DNA of 62,262 nt, filler included, from Choristocarpus tenellus KU-1152 (taxonomy: Eukaryota > Protista > Phaeophyceae), in assembly GCA_964200185.2 (NCBI GenBank). It is 13 parts of 13 records of this genome, joined end to end, with 100 filler letters (N's around TTAATTAATTAA, not from the genome) between each part and the next. Parts side by side here need not be neighbours in the genome. Positions count along the whole stretch, not along the records: positions 23,945 to 28,083 come from CAXNAD020016022.1; 12 more parts are not named here. One strand, given 5' to 3'. The notes below the pieces were generated by a model that made no database searches, was not told the DNA's origin, and was given only the letters and a program-made list of their open reading frames with translations. Positions 1 through 28,183 of this stretch are shown piece after piece. Made by a program: the position numbers and the translations under genes. Each line of letters begins with the position of its first letter. Within the stretch, counting starts at the first letter, position 1.

Positions 1-281
1 CCCCCCCCTCCCAGATACTTTGGGTCTTCTTTGGCCTGTTGCTGTAGAGCTCTACCTGACTAATGCTCCCAACACATTCATATTTGCAATTAACAACAGC
101 CTACATTACATATATGGTGGAAGTTCATTGGAAATAACAATGAATCGCCATGTATATTTTTAACACTTGAGTCAAGAAACTCTAGTTGAGATTAACTAGC
201 TAATAATCCAGCGGCAGTCAGCAGCATCAACAACAACAACAGCATCACTCCGCCCACCCCTGGGACAGGCACTTACCTCAC

Positions 282-1140
282 TTAGTAGATCTGCCCATGC
301 AGACACTCACCCTCGTCTGCGCATGTCATGCCACAAAATGGAGATGTTCCATCAACACTCCCAAGAATAAATCGTAGTGCAATTAACAACAAACACAGTG
401 CACATGGTACATAATCTGGCTGGTGTGCATCATTTCTGCACTCGTTAATTGTTCCTAACTGGTGATTGCTTTTGGCTGGAGGAATAGCCTCACACAAACT
501 GGAAGAAAGACCTAACCCTAACCCTAACCTTGACCCTAAGAAAACTAGATTTTGAACTGGCATTTAAGACCTGATGAGTAGAATCTTTAAAATCTTGATG
601 ATTTCAAAACTCTCTAGTTCTTGGAGGTGTCGTAAATTGGCATTTTCTGTTAATATTTGTTCTTTTTGGTGGTGAGGAGTCTGGCAAAACAAGCCTTTCT
701 GTCATAATATGTTAGAAATAAAGTTTGCAGTAGAGGGGTAATGCAATTACTACAATGCTTAGGATGGGAGAGGAAGGGTGCATCTTCATGAAATTTCAAG
801 GACCAGTCCAACTGAAAGGAGACAAAAGATGTTCAGATACTTCGATTGGGATGTCAGCCTGGGGTATCGAGGCGTGGTTGGTTGGGAGGCCAGACAGGTT
901 TTCCCATCTACTGCAATCTGGGCACAAAAAATAAAATAATATATGAATGCTATGCAACTGGGAAGACCACACCCTCAGTGTAAAGGCGGAACAACTCCTA
1001 ACTTAAAATGAACCTTGGTAAAAATGACAAGAGCTCCTCTCATACCTGTGTACCAACAAGAATATAAGCACAAAAGGAGTTGAAACTACTCCACAACATG
1101 GGACATTTGGTACACTCAAGTATCTCTCTCAATGTTGGTC
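282..1140 (-). mobile_element. Highly decayed Ty3/Gypsy-like pol (RT/RNase H) remnant
   Basis: Frameshifted minus-strand fragments in pol order: FCAYILVG..EELL (RT YxDD region), SGLPTNH..IP..FSWT (RT-RNase H connection), QNLVFL and INECR..PCAL (RNase H end). Weak similarity judged by eye. Confidence 0.3.
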
Positions 1141-1368
1141 AGGTGTAATATATTTATTGTTGGCTGTAAAGCAAGTCTCCTGCGACACGACTTTTTCCTG
1201 CAGTCTTCGAGCACAGGAACCTGCAGTCAATCACAAAAGGGAATCAACACTTAGGGGACCAAGGTACTATACATCCTTTTACTTATACAAACATAATTGT
1301 TACCCTGTTGTAGGGGGAAGGCAGGTGGTCGGGATACACACAAGCAAGGTGTGCCAGAATCGGGGTCT

Positions 1369-1626
1369 GAGTCAAAGTATCTTGGAGGGTAGAGCTGCGT
1401 CCATTTGGGGATCAAAATCCCATGTTGTGATTTTGATGTAATTTTGGCTATCGTGTTTGTTAGGAGATGTCAATATCCTTTTTCTGGACACACCTTTTCA
1501 TAACGTATAAATTTTAACTACTCCGAAACCTTTCAGAGTAGGAAAATGTAAAAAACAAATTGTGGGAAGTCAAGCCCCAAATGAACAAACAGGGCAAAAC
1601 TCGTACCCTCTAAGATACTTTCACTC
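1369..1626 (+). mobile_element. MITE family A, full copy (PIF/Harbinger-like, non-autonomous)
   Basis: Terminal inverted repeats (TIRs) GAGTCAAAGTATCTTGGAGGGTA / TACCCTCTAAGATACTTTCACTC with 3-bp TSD TCT (1366-68, 1627-29). Four other copies in the window. Superfamily inferred from TSD length only. Confidence 0.85.
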
Positions 1627-2843
1627 TCTAGGGAGGGAGGGAGGGAGGAGGCCTGCAACAAATAGGTCTGAGTGGAGTTTCTTTGTAGAATATTAAATGT
1701 AAACCAAATAATGGACAGATTACCATACTTGCCATCCCTTCAACAGAGATATTGAAGCAAAATTTCGGCCTGTGAGAAGTCACGCACAAAGTGGACTGTA
1801 AAGGAGCATAACATAGGGCAGCATCATCTGCAGTTGAAATTACATTCACCTTAGTAGTTGGGAATAAAACGATACAGTAAATAGAAGAATAGGGAGGCAC
1901 TATTATAACTGGTGCAAAGGAGCAACAAGCAACAAATCTCACAACACAAGCATCCTTAAGGTCTCTATCGCAGTAGAGGAGGAAAGAGGTCAAAACATCG
2001 TAAGGCAGAATTTTCAACAATAAAGTAAAGAAACACAAACTGGCTTCAAGAGCTTGCGACCTATCCTGCCTACACTGCCCTCACAGGACTACAGATAGGT
2101 CGAACAACAACAAAAAAAGTCCGCAGCAGCAGGCAAACGTCATCTCCCAACCAACTCCTAACCACGACTGCACCCTATAAATAGAGTTATTTCCTTCAAA
2201 ACGTCACTCACACACACTCACCACACAAGCAGAACCCCCCTCCATTCCCAAGTCACTTACCACGAATCACTACATACTATCCCTCCTCCCTCTTCACCCA
2301 ATATGCCAAAAGCGTATCAGCTACTACAGGTGGAGAGGTCAAACACAGCAGAGACTAACCAGCACGTGTCAAGCCAGTGCCAACAGGCCCCAAGAACAAA
2401 CGCCTATATAACATAACTCCAACTGCATCTTCATGCCGGCACACCTACGTGCACTGTTGCCTCAACACAAGAGAACCACTTCCATAAGCAATGCCCCCAA
2501 CCCAAGCCAACTCTACAGTGGCAAGTCAAAGCGGGTGCCCGTCTTTCTTGGTTTCCGTTTCGAGCCATTTTCGCTGTGCTTGCCCTTGCCCCGCATTTGC
2601 TGCCAACGCCTCCTCCCAGACGTGCTCTTCCCAGCAAACTCCCCAACCTTGTCACCACACGAGTTTTTTTACGAAAAAAAAGAAGAAAATTCGTTGTTGT
2701 ATGTGTTACAGCATGGGGGTGGATTCAGGGGATGGGAATGGCACGGTATTGGTTGTGTGAAAAAAAAAAGTACGTATAGAAAAATTGCATGTACTTTGGA
2801 TGGGAGGTTTATGATGAAGGAGGCGTTCAATTGATTGCGGAAC

Positions 2844-3126
2844 GGGAGTGTCTTGGAAGGTACGAGTTTTTGCCCTGTTTGTCCCCCTTTTTGGGGGGGG
2901 CTTGGCTTCACACCAGTTTTTTTCAAGTCATGGTTCCTACTCCGAAATGTTTCTGGAATTGGTACAATGTCATACGTTTTGGTGTAGGTTTCCTGCATAA
3001 AACCACGAGAAGGTGTGTTAGGAACAAGGATATTGACACTTCCTAACAAAGACAAAGACGATGGCCAAAATTACATCAAAATCGCAACATTGGATTTTGG
3101 CCCCCAAATGGACTCGGTTGTACCCT
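2844..3126 (-). mobile_element. MITE family A, diverged copy in reverse orientation
   Basis: Reverse complement aligns to 1369-1626 (GTACGAGTTTTTGCCCTGTTTGTCC...AAGGATATTGACAC...GGATTTTGGCCCCCAAATGGAC). Confidence 0.75.
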
Positions 3127-3527
3127 TAACCCTAATCTGTGAAGAGTTAAAAAATAAATAAATTTGTGGAGCGTTTAATATATTTTGTTAAGTTGATCTT
3201 CCGTCTCAACTCATGTGCTACCACAGCATCAAGAGTTGTACCCGTGTTACACAAAGAGCCAGTTTTTTTTTTAAAAGGAAAAATTACAGCCGCAACAAAC
3301 CCTAACCCTTCTGGGAGAAACAGGAACAGCAGGAACAAGGCATTGAGTACAAATGACAACCATGTTACACTGTGGATATAAAAAAATGACAAATTGCATA
3401 AAAAAACAAGCAGCACCATTAATTTGTTCAAAACGCCTCCGCAGCAGAGCAGTAATTTGCTTAAAATAAGACAGCTTTTCTAGACCCAATGCATCCATTT
3501 TTCAATCCTTCTCCAGTTTACACTTGA

Positions 3528-23500: not shown

Positions 23501-24686
23501 CCTCAGGGCTCTGTTAAATCGGGTGGAGCCTATCTATTGTACTTGGTAATGACTCTGAAGGATGTTGGCGATGTGTACGGACAGCCTCTTTTTTTTTTTT
23601 AGTTCCACATTTTTCACTGTGCAAGTGGTACGATAACACACCACTTCAACACACCCACCCACCAGTCCACAAAGATAAGCATTTTACCCCCTCATCTCCT
23701 GAATCCATCGTGGTCCCTTCATTAACCCTGACAACCTCATCAATTTCCTAACCAAAAACCATTTTCCACACCCTAGCCCAACCCACCCCCTCCTTTGCCC
23801 TACTTCTTGTTGCTGCATCTCATTGCCTCCTAACTTGCCCCCCCNNNNNNNNNNNNNNNNNNNNNNNNNNNNNNNNNNNNNNNNNNNNTTAATTAATTAA
23901 NNNNNNNNNNNNNNNNNNNNNNNNNNNNNNNNNNNNNNNNNNNNGGTATTGTGTTTGTTTTGGCGTATAGGGTGGGTTGTGGTTTGTAGTGGCATTGCTG
24001 GGGGGGGGGGGGGGTACTGTTGATGTGTTTGTTTGGTGGGTTGTTTTATCTCTGAAATAATCTGCAGCTGCATGGTAATACCGTTAGTGTCGAACATAGC
24101 ATCATGGTAGACAACAGGGTGGGGGGTAGTGGTGTGGTGAAGAAGTCATCGTTCTTATGGTGATGAGGGGATGTGCTAGTAATGGTTATTTGACATTGAT
24201 CACGGAGTGGGGGATGGGATGTAGGAATCTAGAGAATGGAGGCTGATATCGTATTTACTTTCAGAATATATATAACCTGAGGCTCTTGATACTTTGCCGT
24301 GTATTTCTTTCCATAGTTAGTACGATCTATTGGTACTCCCTGGTGACTCTCCAACTCTGGCCTGGAAGGTATGTAGTACAGTAGAACACTTCGACAAGGT
24401 AAGAAGTGCCTGCGGAGTTGCTATTCGTCTCGTTCGACTCCTTTTTCTGTCAGTTTTGCTCTCTAGGCGACCTCGTAGTCTTGCTTGTTGATACTTTGGT
24501 TGCGGCTGTAGGGCAACAGCCTCTTCTCGAGAGGACGTGCGCAACATGACCTGCTGATGTATAACCCGGTGTGCTACTCTGTCAACGTGTGTTATGCGAT
24601 AGAATGTTTCTCGCTTATGTTCATTCGATGCAGTAAAGGTTTTTTTTTAGTGCTGGTTTGCCAGCGGCAATTGCCTGATAGACGTG

Positions 24687-24771
24687 GCTGGGTTGATGAT
24701 AAGAGAATGTTCGTTGACCATGCCCCAGTGCATGCTGATGCCATACGACAGACTACAATTCCCTGACCAGC
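24687..24771 (+). ncRNA. Box C/D snoRNA, copy 1 (predicted LSU rRNA 2'-O-methylation guide)
   Basis: Terminal stem GCTGG/CCAGC, C box TGATGA, D'-like TTGA, C'-like TGATGC, guide AGACTACAATTC + C, D box CTGA. Confidence 0.85.
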
Positions 24772-25218
24772 AACGGATCATCTCCTCTCAAGTGAGGCAT
24801 AGGCGCCCCCCCGTTCCTGCTGTGGAAGTGAATTCGTGCCTCCTCCATTTCGATACTGGTAGTTGTAACAGCGATGGTGATACTGGCTGGCTTATTGACG
24901 GTATTCTTGTTGTCATTAACCCAGCACGTGCTAGTGGAAACTGAATATTTTTTTGCAATTCTCTCTGACCAGTTGAATGTAGACTGCCCTTCCCGGGTTT
25001 GGTTGTATCTAGAAGTAGGTGCATGTCGTGGATGTTGACTGGACAGTTACATGGATAGATACGAGTATCTCTGTCTGTCGAGTTAACCCAGTAGTGCAAT
25101 TCGATGCGTACAAAGGATGAGCGGTTTTGTGATCACCAGAGGCTGTAGTGTTGCGGGTCTCGCCTGGGGTATTGGCATTCGGTTTGTTGAAGTAATGGCG
25201 GTTAGGGTTAGGGTTAGG

Positions 25219-25300
25219 GCTAGGATTGAGGTAGTGAATATCTCCTTTGTTTTTGATGCGTACGTGTTGATGCTCTCCGAAGACTCCTTGTTGCATTGGT
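25219..25300 (+). pseudogene. Decayed copy of the same snoRNA
   Basis: TGATGCTCTCCGAAGACT (25268-85) matches the consensus TGATGCTCACGAAAAGACT; C box, guide and D box are eroded; sits at the array period. Confidence 0.45.
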
Positions 25301-25576
25301 AAATTTACAAGGCAGTTTGTTAAGACTCCCATGTGTGTGATAACTCTGCTCTGATCTTTTTTGAGAACGTTTGATATGGTGTTGACAGTTACTGGGTTAA
25401 TTACAAGTACTTTGGCAACCGCATTCTAGAACTAGTAGTGCTCATCGGTTCATCCTAGTGAGGGTTTGCGATTCTATGACTAGGAGAAGGGTTCATTTCT
25501 AGTTAGGGCTTTCTGTTCTTTCGGTGTTAGGACCCTGTTCGACTGTTTTGAGTGTGTTTTATGGCACTCTTTGTTG

Positions 25577-25694
25577 ATCTGGTGTTGGTAGTTGGGGGCA
25601 CTAGTATTCTGTCACTATTCATGGTGCTTGTGGTGGGAGCACTGACTTGCTTGCCAGCGATCCCGAAAGATGTTCTTGAGCTTCCTGACCAGAT
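25577..25694 (+). pseudogene. Divergent or decayed C/D snoRNA copy
   Basis: Stem ATCTGG/CCAGAT, eroded C box TGTTGG, and CGAAAGA...TTCCTGACCAG matching the family 3' end; guide changed. Confidence 0.4.
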
Positions 25695-26084
25695 GAATTT
25701 CATCGCCTGTCCCAGGTGGTTGAACTTTGCGATAGATATCATGTGAAGATGTTGCCTGCCCTCGCGCTGGGCAGGCATGGGCATATGCTGGAGGGCTATG
25801 AGCACTACCAGTGTCTTGATAGTGTTTAAGCTCTTGGGACATTCTGGTATACCTCATTCGAAAATGGTTTCACAGTGTTCCGTATAACCGGTTCAATGTA
25901 CCTGTGGACGTTGTGGGCAGGTGAGGCTAAGGGTTGAGAGCAGGCAGTCAAAGCGCATTGCTAGCAGCCACAACACACACGCGCGCCTTTGGTGAATATC
26001 TAGTTGCTACTGGGCATTACCTTTTCGATGTGGGGTGCTGGTTGGCCCGACTTCAGTGTGCTTGCTTGACTTGGACAGGGGCTC

Positions 26085-26173
26085 TGCTGGGGTGATGATA
26101 AAAAAAACATTCGTTGACAAACGCCTCCGTGCATGATGATGCTCACGAAAAGACTACAATTCCCTGACCAGCA
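26085..26173 (+). ncRNA. Box C/D snoRNA, copy 2
   Basis: TGCTGG-G-GTGATGA...TTGA...TGATGC...AGACTACAATTCC-CTGA-CCAGCA. Confidence 0.88.
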
Positions 26174-26588
26174 AATGAACCGGTTGTCTATCTCGGTCAG
26201 TAGCTCTCGTGTTCAGGCAGTTATCTTACCTTACTGCCTGTGTTGGTTTGAAGGTAGCAGGGACGGTGGTATTGACCAAGGAGGATCCTTACTGGCGGTG
26301 CTCTCGTCATCGTCCCCGAAGGGTGGGTGGGTACTGTCGTCTTTGGGGGTGTGGGTGAAATCATGGCCTCTACAATGTGTTTCGTACAGAGATGATTTTT
26401 TTGGGTATAAATAGAGGTTGAGCTTGTGACACGGGATGGTCTGTAGATGACATGGTTTTGTTGAGTGTGTCGGGGGTTGTCTGGATCGGTTCTTGCGCCC
26501 CGCCCGCCTGCCCGCCTGCCTTTGTGTTGCTTGTGGAAATTGTGTTCCGGGGGCTCTATTTTGTAACTTCGATGCGGTGGAAGGAAGG

Positions 26589-26674
26589 CAACCGGGTTTG
26601 ATGATAATTGTCTCTGTTGACTTCGTCTCTGTCCACACTGATGCTCACGAAAGGCTGCAATTTCCTGACCGTTG
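26589..26674 (+). ncRNA. Box C/D snoRNA, copy 3 (divergent)
   Basis: Different terminal stem CAAC(C)GG/CCGTTG; TGATGA, TTGA, TGATGCTCACGAA, guide AGGCTGCAATTT, CTGA. Confidence 0.75.
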
Positions 26675-27116
26675 GAGCACCAGTGCGTCTTGGTTAGGAA
26701 CCCCCTTCTTGTGAAGTGCTGTATGGATGGGCACCAACATTTTGTCTTGAGCGTTGGAATCAGTGGTGGTGATATTTGATCAATGAGGAACCTTTGTTGG
26801 CGCTCACACGAAGCTCCTGGTTTTTTTTTTTATGGAAGGCTTTTTCGACTTGCCGTGGAATTTCTTGGTCCCGTTGGCCGGTGGTGACGTAAAGAGCGAT
26901 TTGTATCGCGCGCCGTGATTGTTGATTGTTTTTTTTGACGAAATGGGTCATAAATTTGGTGATTACAATTTTTATTTTTTATGTTAAGTAGTTGTGCAGA
27001 GCTGAGAGGCGTTGTTGTTCGCTGATGTTTGTTTGTTTCCGTTTTTGATGTGAATGGACTGCTTCGTACTTACTTTTACGGTCTCTATTTTTTTTTTTAC
27101 TTGGTGGCGAGAGCCA

Positions 27117-27204
27117 GCTGGGATGAAGATAAAGGAAACACTCGTTGACAAAACGCCTCCGTGCGTGATGATGCTCACGAAAAGACTACAATTCCCTGAC
27201 CAGC
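27117..27204 (+). ncRNA. Box C/D snoRNA, copy 4
   Basis: GCTGG/CCAGC stem, variant C box ATGAAGA, guide and D box identical to copy 2. Confidence 0.8.
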
Positions 27205-27546
27205 AAATGAACCGGTCGGTTGGTTGTCTATCTCGATCAGTGGGTCTTCTGTTGAAGCATGACGTGTCCGGGCTGCTGCCTGTATTTTTTGAGTGTTGGT
27301 ATTAGCGACGGCGATCATGACCAACGGTTATATTGCCCGAGAGGATTGTTGTTCGCGGGATTGCCTCTCCCTGTTTGTGCTGAATGATAAGACTCTCTTA
27401 CGTTCGTTCTGCCGTGTGTAGTGGCTGGATCGGTGATCGGATGGCATCTTCGTGTTCATCGAGCTCATGTGCCTCGAGTCTGTTTTTCTTTTTCATTGTG
27501 TCTTGCTTGCGTTGAACGATTGTTCGCGGGCGGTGTGACGGAGGTG

Positions 27547-27633
27547 GCTGGGGTGATGATAAAAAAAACATTCATTGACAAACGCCTCCGTGCGTGATGA
27601 TGCTCACGAAAAGACTACAATTCCCTGACCAGC
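27547..27633 (+). ncRNA. Box C/D snoRNA, copy 5
   Basis: GCTGG-G-GTGATGA...AGACTACAATTCC-CTGA-CCAGC; nearly identical to copy 2. Confidence 0.88.
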
Positions 27634-28183
27634 AACGTAACGTAACTGTCGCGACGACGACGCCTCTGAGCGCTTTTTTTTACTCTGATGGACTCTAAAT
27701 GCGATGTTGTTGTGAAATGTCTTTTTATTTTATTTTTTATTTTTTTTTGTTTAACCCCTCGTCAAGATCCCTTCGTAAAAAAAAAAAAGGGGAACCGAAA
27801 GATTGCCTCGGTTGAGAGAGTGTTGCCAACTTCACAATCGCAGGGGATGGTGAATGGTAAACCCCCCAGGTGTATCCAGCACAATAGTGAGGAGTGTGTA
27901 ATTTGCCCTTTGTGACTTCTACGCAAAGGCGACCCGGAGTTGATCCTTGTTTGACAGACCCGTCGCGAGTGTTTTCCCTTTTGTTTTGTAGATGGTGTGT
28001 CTTGTACAGTGGGCGGGGGGATTTTTAAAGATCAAGGTGTTTTGTTACAAACAGGAACTCTATGATAGTTTTTGCGAAGGGGGNNNNNNNNNNNNNNNNN
28101 NNNNNNNNNNNNNNNNNNNNNNNNNNNTTAATTAATTAANNNNNNNNNNNNNNNNNNNNNNNNNNNNNNNNNNNNNNNNNNNN

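Follow-up and report, generated by a model that had tools for sequence, protein, structure and literature searches.

In small nucleolar RNAs (snoRNAs) of the box C/D class, the target base that pairs with the fifth nucleotide (nt) upstream of box D is methylated, and it is well established that the ribonucleoprotein particle (snoRNP) forms around a kink-turn which recruits Snu13/L7Ae, Nop56, Nop58 and fibrillarin. The closest described counterpart of the locus presented here is a plant RNA of this class, AtsnoR36 (SnoR36) of Arabidopsis, to which the Rfam family snoZ155 (RF00326) appears to correspond. In Arabidopsis 25S ribosomal RNA (rRNA), U144 is 2'-O-methylated (RiboMeth score ~0.9), with SnoR36 as the assigned guide (Table 1 and Data S1 of PMC8053127). 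Um144_25S is also listed for AtsnoR36 (At4gCDbox108.1) in a second study, which gives no human or yeast equivalent of the site; in that study AtsnoR36 is abundant in the sequencing of FIB2 co-immunoprecipitates and is listed right after At41Y (PMC8583080). The identity of snoZ155 with snoR36 is supported because the order of snoR41 and snoZ155 in seed plants, where snoR41 lies 100-220 nt upstream of snoZ155 (loci L096, L106, L114, L121, L122 and L166), matches the At41Y/AtsnoR36 neighbourhood of Arabidopsis. The locus considered here lies in a window of 62,262 nt assembled from parts of genome assembly GCA_964200185.2. The piece analysed is record CAXNAD020016022.1 (positions 23945-28083, ~4.1 kb), and all coordinates are those of the whole stretch. 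This piece appears to contain a head-to-tail gene array for one box C/D snoRNA that would guide methylation of the large-subunit (LSU) rRNA at the equivalent of Um144. A probability of roughly 0.8 is given to this reading, which includes the proposal that the array RNA is the functional counterpart of plant snoR36/snoZ155.

Organization of the array

Five islands of 85-89 nt each lie on the + strand within 3 kb, where an earlier note made from the sequence alone had placed them. A profile hidden Markov model built from the five copies recovers all five, with E-values from 2e-31 to 7.5e-20, and finds a single further match (25259-25286). The copies, and two features that relate to them, are as follows.

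24687-24771, + strand: copy 1 (c1), 85 nt; stem GCUGG/CCAGC; C box UUGAUGA at 24693-24699; D' box UUGA; C' box UGAUGC; guide 24750-24762; D box CUGA at 24763-24766; profile E 2.8e-26

26085-26173, + strand: copy 2 (c2), 89 nt; 6-bp (base-pair) stem; C box GUGAUGA at 26092-26098; D' box UUGA at 26114-26117; C' box 26137-26142; guide 26151-26163; D box 26164-26167; profile E 2.2e-31

26590-26675, + strand: copy 3 (c3), diverged; C box UUGAUGA at 26598-26604; guide GGCUGCAAUUUC at 26653-26664; D box 26665-26668; terminal stem of 3 bp, a bulge and 3 bp; profile E 7.5e-20

27117-27204, + strand: copy 4 (c4), 88 nt; stem GCUGG/CCAGC; variant C box AUGAAGA at 27123-27129; guide 27183-27195; D box 27196-27199; profile E 3.4e-29

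27547-27633, + strand: copy 5 (c5), 87 nt; stem GCUGG/CCAGC; C box GUGAUGA at 27553-27559; guide 27612-27624; D box 27625-27628; profile E 5.7e-31

25259-25286, + strand: possible decayed further copy, from the C' box to the start of the guide only; weak match (profile E 0.005, 8.6 bits)

26174-26279, + strand: downstream flank of copy 2, homologous by self-BLAST to 27205-27324 after copy 4

Consecutive copies start ~1400, 505, 527 and 430 nt apart. The spacers between them are 340-1300 nt long and most cannot be aligned with each other by self-BLAST, which bears out the description of the spacers as diverged in the earlier note. Copies 2 and 5 are 98% identical. Homology is confined to islands of ~90 nt, with the exception of ~105 nt of downstream flank common to copies 2 and 4 (26086-26279 versus 27117-27324, 77% identity over 209 columns in self-BLAST). 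Judging from this alignment, the common flank is the trace of a later duplication whose unit was bigger than the snoRNA. The 12-mer AGACTACAATTC occurs exactly four times in the piece (24750, 26151, 27183 and 27612), as against 0.03 occurrences expected from shuffled sequences, and copy 3 carries GGCTGCAATTTC in its place at 26653-26664. The 12-nt element that had been ascribed to all five islands is thus present in four of them, while the guide of copy 3 has three changes.

It is scarcely credible that the islands belong to a dispersed mobile element or satellite which merely resembles a snoRNA. The view of the genome is limited to 4.1 kb, and further low-complexity stretches, as well as a short repeat resembling telomeric sequence, are present in the locus, but the copies form a local tandem on a single strand, homology ends at the snoRNA ends, and no copy has a poly(A) tail or a flanking target-site duplication. 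In addition, none of the eight open reading frames (ORFs) tested (75-135 aa, including the longest of 135 aa) matches a Pfam family, those of transposon proteins included, and the conserved positions are exactly the functional elements of a C/D RNA.

Two segments ending in CTGACCAG, at 24965 and 25685, have the look of decayed copies by eye, but the profile search gives them no support. A generic C/D scan of the spacers for other C/D snoRNAs returned only a weak candidate at 24134-24246, for which no convincing terminal stem could be placed next to the best of its internal C boxes.

Architecture and conservation of the copies

The order of elements from 5' to 3' is a stem strand GCUGG (5-6 bp), box C, a spacer, box D', ~20 nt, box C', a linker, the guide, box D and the closing strand CCAGC. 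All of these elements occur in the right order and spacing in the five copies, as expected from the canonical C/D architecture proposed in the earlier note, and on this evidence the locus is assigned to the box C/D snoRNA class. The C box reads GUGAUGA in c2 and c5, UUGAUGA in c1 and c3, and AUGAAGA in c4, the consensus of the class being RUGAUGA. The D' spacer between box C and UUGA is 14-15 nt long, or 11 nt in the diverged c3. UUGA (D') and UGAUGC (C') are invariant, each being one mismatch off consensus, and 8 nt of linker separate C' from the guide. The guide, AGACUACAAUUCC, is 13 nt long and identical in c1, c2, c4 and c5, and the CUGA D box is present in all five copies. The terminal stem GCUGG/CCAGC is 5-6 bp in c1, c2, c4 and c5, where the class requires at least 4 bp. 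A common stem and C box, as first described, therefore hold for most copies, the exceptions being the C box of copy 4 and the interrupted stem of copy 3. Overall, four copies look intact or nearly so from their sequences and one looks diverged.

Conservation is distributed very unevenly along the RNA. Pairwise identity among c1, c2, c4 and c5 is 100% for both stem strands, D', C', the guide and box D, compared with 83% for box C, 72% for the D' spacer, 56% for the linker preceding the guide and 30-65% for the flanks. The main internal argument for function of the array is that conservation falls exactly on the elements needed by the C/D snoRNP. The retention of stem, boxes and guide while spacers, linkers and flanks drift points to purifying selection. 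The suggestion that only the D guide is constrained agrees with these values, in which the guide stands at 100% and the D' spacer at 72%.

Alternatively, the locus could be mostly a graveyard that was amplified by unequal crossing-over, in which most or all of the copies are silent pseudogenes and the working gene is located elsewhere. The divergence of copy 3 amounts to 20-25% and its stem is interrupted, the C box of copy 4 is mutated, a weak relic is found at 25259-25286, the fragments ending in CTGACCAG fail to score as copies, and no RNA sequencing run contains the locus. This alternative is nevertheless unlikely, as neutral decay is not expected to leave precisely the functional elements untouched. 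In four copies, stem, boxes and guide remain at 100%, whereas the D' spacer, linker and flanks have drifted to the values given above and most of the spacers have become unalignable.

The guide and its predicted target

The guide complement, GAAUUGUAGUCU, corresponds to nt 141-152 of Arabidopsis 25S rRNA, as counted on the sequence in Data S1 of PMC8053127. In 90 eukaryotic ribosomal DNA loci it lies ~100 nt into the LSU, in keeping with the earlier note, which placed the target in the LSU 5' domain. The fifth-nucleotide (D+5) rule picks the first U of GAAUUGUAGUCU, which is U144 of Arabidopsis 25S rRNA; methylation had been predicted at this U, and the position coincides with the Um144 detected by RiboMeth-seq and assigned to SnoR36. 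All five D guides were compared with a complete plant ribosomal DNA (rDNA) unit (L017), in which the 18S, 5.8S and 25S rRNAs were bounded with Rfam. For the guides of c1, c2, c4 and c5, the LSU site is the only match of at least 9 bp in this unit, with 12-13 Watson-Crick bp. Pairing starts at position 2 from box D, and the guide of copy 1 forms 13 bp with the plant-type LSU. The search for targets of a D' guide yielded only A/U- and G.U-rich matches of 9-10 bp near nt 959 of the plant 18S rRNA, not in all copies, and this region is not a listed methylation site in Arabidopsis. The D' spacer lacks a conserved guide and probably also a target, and the RNA probably uses a single guide.

The guide of copy 3 differs from that of the other copies at three positions, all of which are A-to-G or C-to-U transitions, and it still pairs with the LSU target over 12 bp including 3 G.U. 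By our own estimate, the chance that all of the changes would preserve pairing under neutrality is roughly 0.01-0.04. These wobble-preserving changes are treated as weak evidence because conservation of the copy 3 guide does not exceed that of the remainder of the copy. The third stem pair of copy 3 has changed from U-A to C-G, on both sides of the stem.

A true C/D RNA might instead serve another target, such as a small nuclear RNA or a different rRNA site, or be an orphan, and copy 3 might have shifted to GAAUUGCAG in the 5.8S rRNA. The pairing with the LSU rests on the rRNA of other eukaryotes, and the guide of copy 3 forms 9 contiguous bp (1 G.U) with GAAUUGCAG of plant 5.8S rRNA, where the A-to-G change converts a mismatch into a G-C pair. 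The D+5 position in this pairing falls on the first U of UU, which is two nucleotides from a G that we take to be methylated in human 5.8S rRNA. That U is absent from the list of methylated positions in Arabidopsis 5.8S rRNA (A47 and G79), however, and copy 3 pairs better with the LSU (12 bp, 3 G.U) than with 5.8S rRNA (9 bp). For the other four copies the LSU site is a unique match of 12-13 Watson-Crick bp, it coincides with a U whose methylation has been measured in Arabidopsis, and other lineages have retained this guide in C/D scaffolds that are unrelated. A different target is therefore highly unlikely, and the LSU site at the Um144 equivalent is preferred. The sequence CUGCAAUU within the guide of copy 3 (26653-26664) is perfectly complementary to the universal 5.8S motif AAUUGCAG.

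Relationship to plant snoZ155 and snoR36

An Rfam search, which the earlier note had proposed as a check, was run at E-values up to 10 and had a divided outcome. The best match is plant snoZ155, which carries the same guide, but the scores of copy 2 (25.9 bits) and copy 5 (23.0 bits) are below the gathering score of 43 bits. The match spans the full snoZ155 model, and for copy 2 it covers exactly 26085-26173. Other sub-threshold hits, to snoZ157, snoZ169, rpsB, mir-2528, StyR-143 and sR43, are considered noise. It had also been suggested that the array might represent an uncatalogued family; the Rfam model indeed does not reach the copies, although the guide they carry is the one that defines plant snoZ155/snoR36.

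The array RNA and snoZ155/AtsnoR36 both belong to the box C/D class. In the snoZ155 consensus, as in the array RNA, AGACUACAAUU stands directly upstream of box D, separated from CUGA by two nucleotides. Both share a predicted target, namely the U that comes first in GAAUUGUAGUCU within the 5' domain of the LSU (Um144 in Arabidopsis), the D' side is poorly conserved in both, and the sizes are similar (81 nt for the model, 85-89 nt here). Unlike these RNAs, the array RNA has a body that is unrelated to snoZ155 outside the boxes and the guide (25.9 bits, compared with 49-86 bits in plant and moss loci), and the two nucleotides that separate its guide from the D box are CC instead of the AU of plants. 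The genomic setting differs as well. In plants, snoZ155 is found beside snoR41 in mixed clusters with short spacers, whereas the array consists of five copies of a single family with spacers of 340-1300 nt. No snoR41-like match was found in the 4.1-kb piece by the Rfam search at E-values up to 10. The pairing of this guide with this target is already known from plants (snoR36/Z155, Um144), and there is no new family here in a deeper sense. What sets the array apart from the known versions, as far as can be read from the sequence, is the unrelated RNA body, the homogeneous five-copy array with long spacers and the lack of a snoR41 partner. Literature searches that covered stramenopile snoRNAs as well turned up no account of this family beyond plants.

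Distribution of the guide

Metagenomes were scanned for the pattern TGATGA, 35-65 nt, AGACTACAATTNNCTGA, which gave 102 matches in 96 loci. Versions from land plants and mosses are numerous, have AU before CUGA and stems of up to 12 bp, and in the loci tested pass the snoZ155 threshold with 49-86 bits. Independent C/D RNAs with this guide and stems of 9-12 bp occur on plant, moss and probably chlorophyte contigs. Three groups of non-embryophyte loci (L117/L134/L181, L103/L138/L140/L184 and L131/L160/L173) resemble the array in having a TGATGA C box and AGACUACAAUU followed by CC, CU or CG and then CUGA, with terminal stems of up to 12 bp, and like the array they are below the snoZ155 threshold. 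Unlike the array, the members of these groups are single-copy on their contigs, and their bodies are unrelated to it. The L103 group is probably chlorophyte, since the gene next to L103 resembles chlorophyte proteins, and this assignment serves as a lead only; the gene neighbouring L117 gave no usable taxon. A profile of the array copies found no convincing close relative of the array RNA body among the 96 metagenome loci.

Tandem copies of this snoRNA are found in mosses, where loci carry two or three of them, although the spacers of the array are longer than the ~140 nt of mosses. Among the moss-type loci (L100, L130, L146, L147 and L171; L144, L149, L150, L168 and L177), some have two tandem snoZ155 copies 143 nt apart, and in others a second copy lies at a distance of 400-550 nt and its guide differs by one base (AAUU replaced by AAUC or AAAU). 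To judge from these sequences, duplication and drift of this snoRNA occur in plants too. A C/D RNA with the same guide and CA before CUGA is encoded on the - strand of a metagenome contig of 70% GC (L135, 441-518 and 796-895). It lies ~280 nt from a match to SNORD24/U24 above the Rfam threshold, so that the partner in this cluster differs from the snoR41 of plants.

Two further groups of matches, L098/L137/L159/L189 and L132/L178, located within or at long ORFs of compact contigs, probably represent chance matches in bacteria. In the former group, a 67-nt segment (for example L098:2583-2649) with a guide-like string and a CTGA end is common to the four ORF-dense contigs. It is located just upstream of, or overlaps, the start of a long ORF and is probably a conserved bacterial leader or gene start rather than a snoRNA.

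Distribution of the target site

Prokaryotic genome assemblies were scanned for a conserved LSU 5' motif followed by a gap of 55-85 nt and the target 12-mer. The scan returned 90 contaminating eukaryotic rDNA loci (L006-L095) in which the 12-mer lies ~100 nt from the LSU 5' end, and in all three loci tested with Rfam the LSU_rRNA_eukarya model starts ~47 nt before the motif. Most of the 90 loci are of land-plant type, 17 being identical to Arabidopsis across the region compared. About 20 are clearly from other eukaryotes, and identity among these is only 75-86% across the first 430 nt. One of these 20 or so, L078, is very similar to the beginning of the LSU from the oomycete Pythium flevoense, which contains the target 12-mer (PMC10623814). 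Because the LSU start of P. flevoense holds the 12-mer, the target site is present, on sequence identity, in at least one stramenopile lineage.

The 90 rDNA contigs are filed under bacterial and archaeal assemblies, isolates and metagenome-assembled genomes alike, as contamination. The oomycete-like LSU of L078 (440-2587) covers positions 1-3401 of the Rfam model in only 2148 nt, which indicates either a large internal deletion or a misassembly. Scanning of viral contigs for target and guide gave five chance matches, none of which has an Rfam family.

Proposed transcription and mode of action

Of 26 windows over 23945-28083, 25 show a positive GC skew and all show a negative AT skew, making the + strand rich in G+T. 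This strand skew would be compatible with transcription of the entire region in the orientation of the snoRNAs. No conserved motif upstream of the individual copies is common to them, and coding potential in the piece is not convincing. The array resembles the clustered snoRNA genes of plants and protists in that several genes lie close together on the same strand without a promoter-like conserved element upstream of each; it differs from them in being homogeneous, with a single family. Since such an element is lacking and the + strand is uniformly rich in G+T, we infer that the copies would be released from one long + strand precursor by processing, either of a polycistron or of the introns of a non-coding host gene. 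In each RNA of ~87 nt, boxes C and D, clamped by the terminal stem of 5-6 bp, would form a kink-turn that recruits Snu13/L7Ae, Nop56, Nop58 and fibrillarin. The 12-13 nt upstream of box D would then anneal to the 5' domain of the nascent pre-LSU rRNA at GAAUUGUAGUCU, allowing fibrillarin to 2'-O-methylate the first U of GAAUUGUAGUCU, the predicted equivalent of Arabidopsis 25S Um144.

Several observations weigh against a functional array of this kind. The D' box UUGA and the C' box UGAUGC are degenerate, position 5 of box C, usually a U, is A in copy 4, and the stem and guide of copy 3 are weakened; given the state of copies 3 and 4, some copies may be dead. The identity between copies could be due in part to recent duplication or gene conversion instead of selection; c2 and c5 share 98% identity. 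The copies score below the snoZ155 gathering threshold (25.9 versus 43 bits), and spacers of 340-1300 nt are long for a polycistron of the plant type. In addition, pairing with the target was computed against the rRNA of other eukaryotes only, and the locus is contained in three DNA sequencing runs and in no RNA sequencing run.

Apart from what it shows of gene turnover, of the Rfam model and of annotation, the RNA is of an ordinary housekeeping kind. The array, in which intact, variant and decayed copies are found next to each other, is a small natural case of snoRNA gene turnover. The snoZ155 model of Rfam recognises land-plant versions only, though C/D RNAs with the same guide range more widely, and a broader model could be built from the array copies and the non-plant loci. 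The array also adds an annotatable non-coding gene family in a region where ORF-based annotation sees nothing, and it predicts one specific rRNA methylation. If the host lies outside the green plants and algae, the pair of guide and target could be an ancient eukaryotic modification that several supergroups have retained, and the array could display birth-and-death evolution with copy 3 drifting to the closely similar 5.8S motif GAAUUGCAG and a new specificity, although this wider interpretation is unlikely.

Other features of the piece

The G+T richness of the + strand may reflect an asymmetry linked to transcription. A run of ~17 G is found at 23999-24015, and runs of 8-13 T occur at 24640, 26820, 27088 and 27672. 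The long spacer between copies 1 and 2 contains, at 25203-25228, an interstitial telomere-like repeat, GGTTAGGGTTAGGGTTAGGGCTAGG, of ~3.5 units of TTAGGG, which may hint at the type of telomere repeat of the host.

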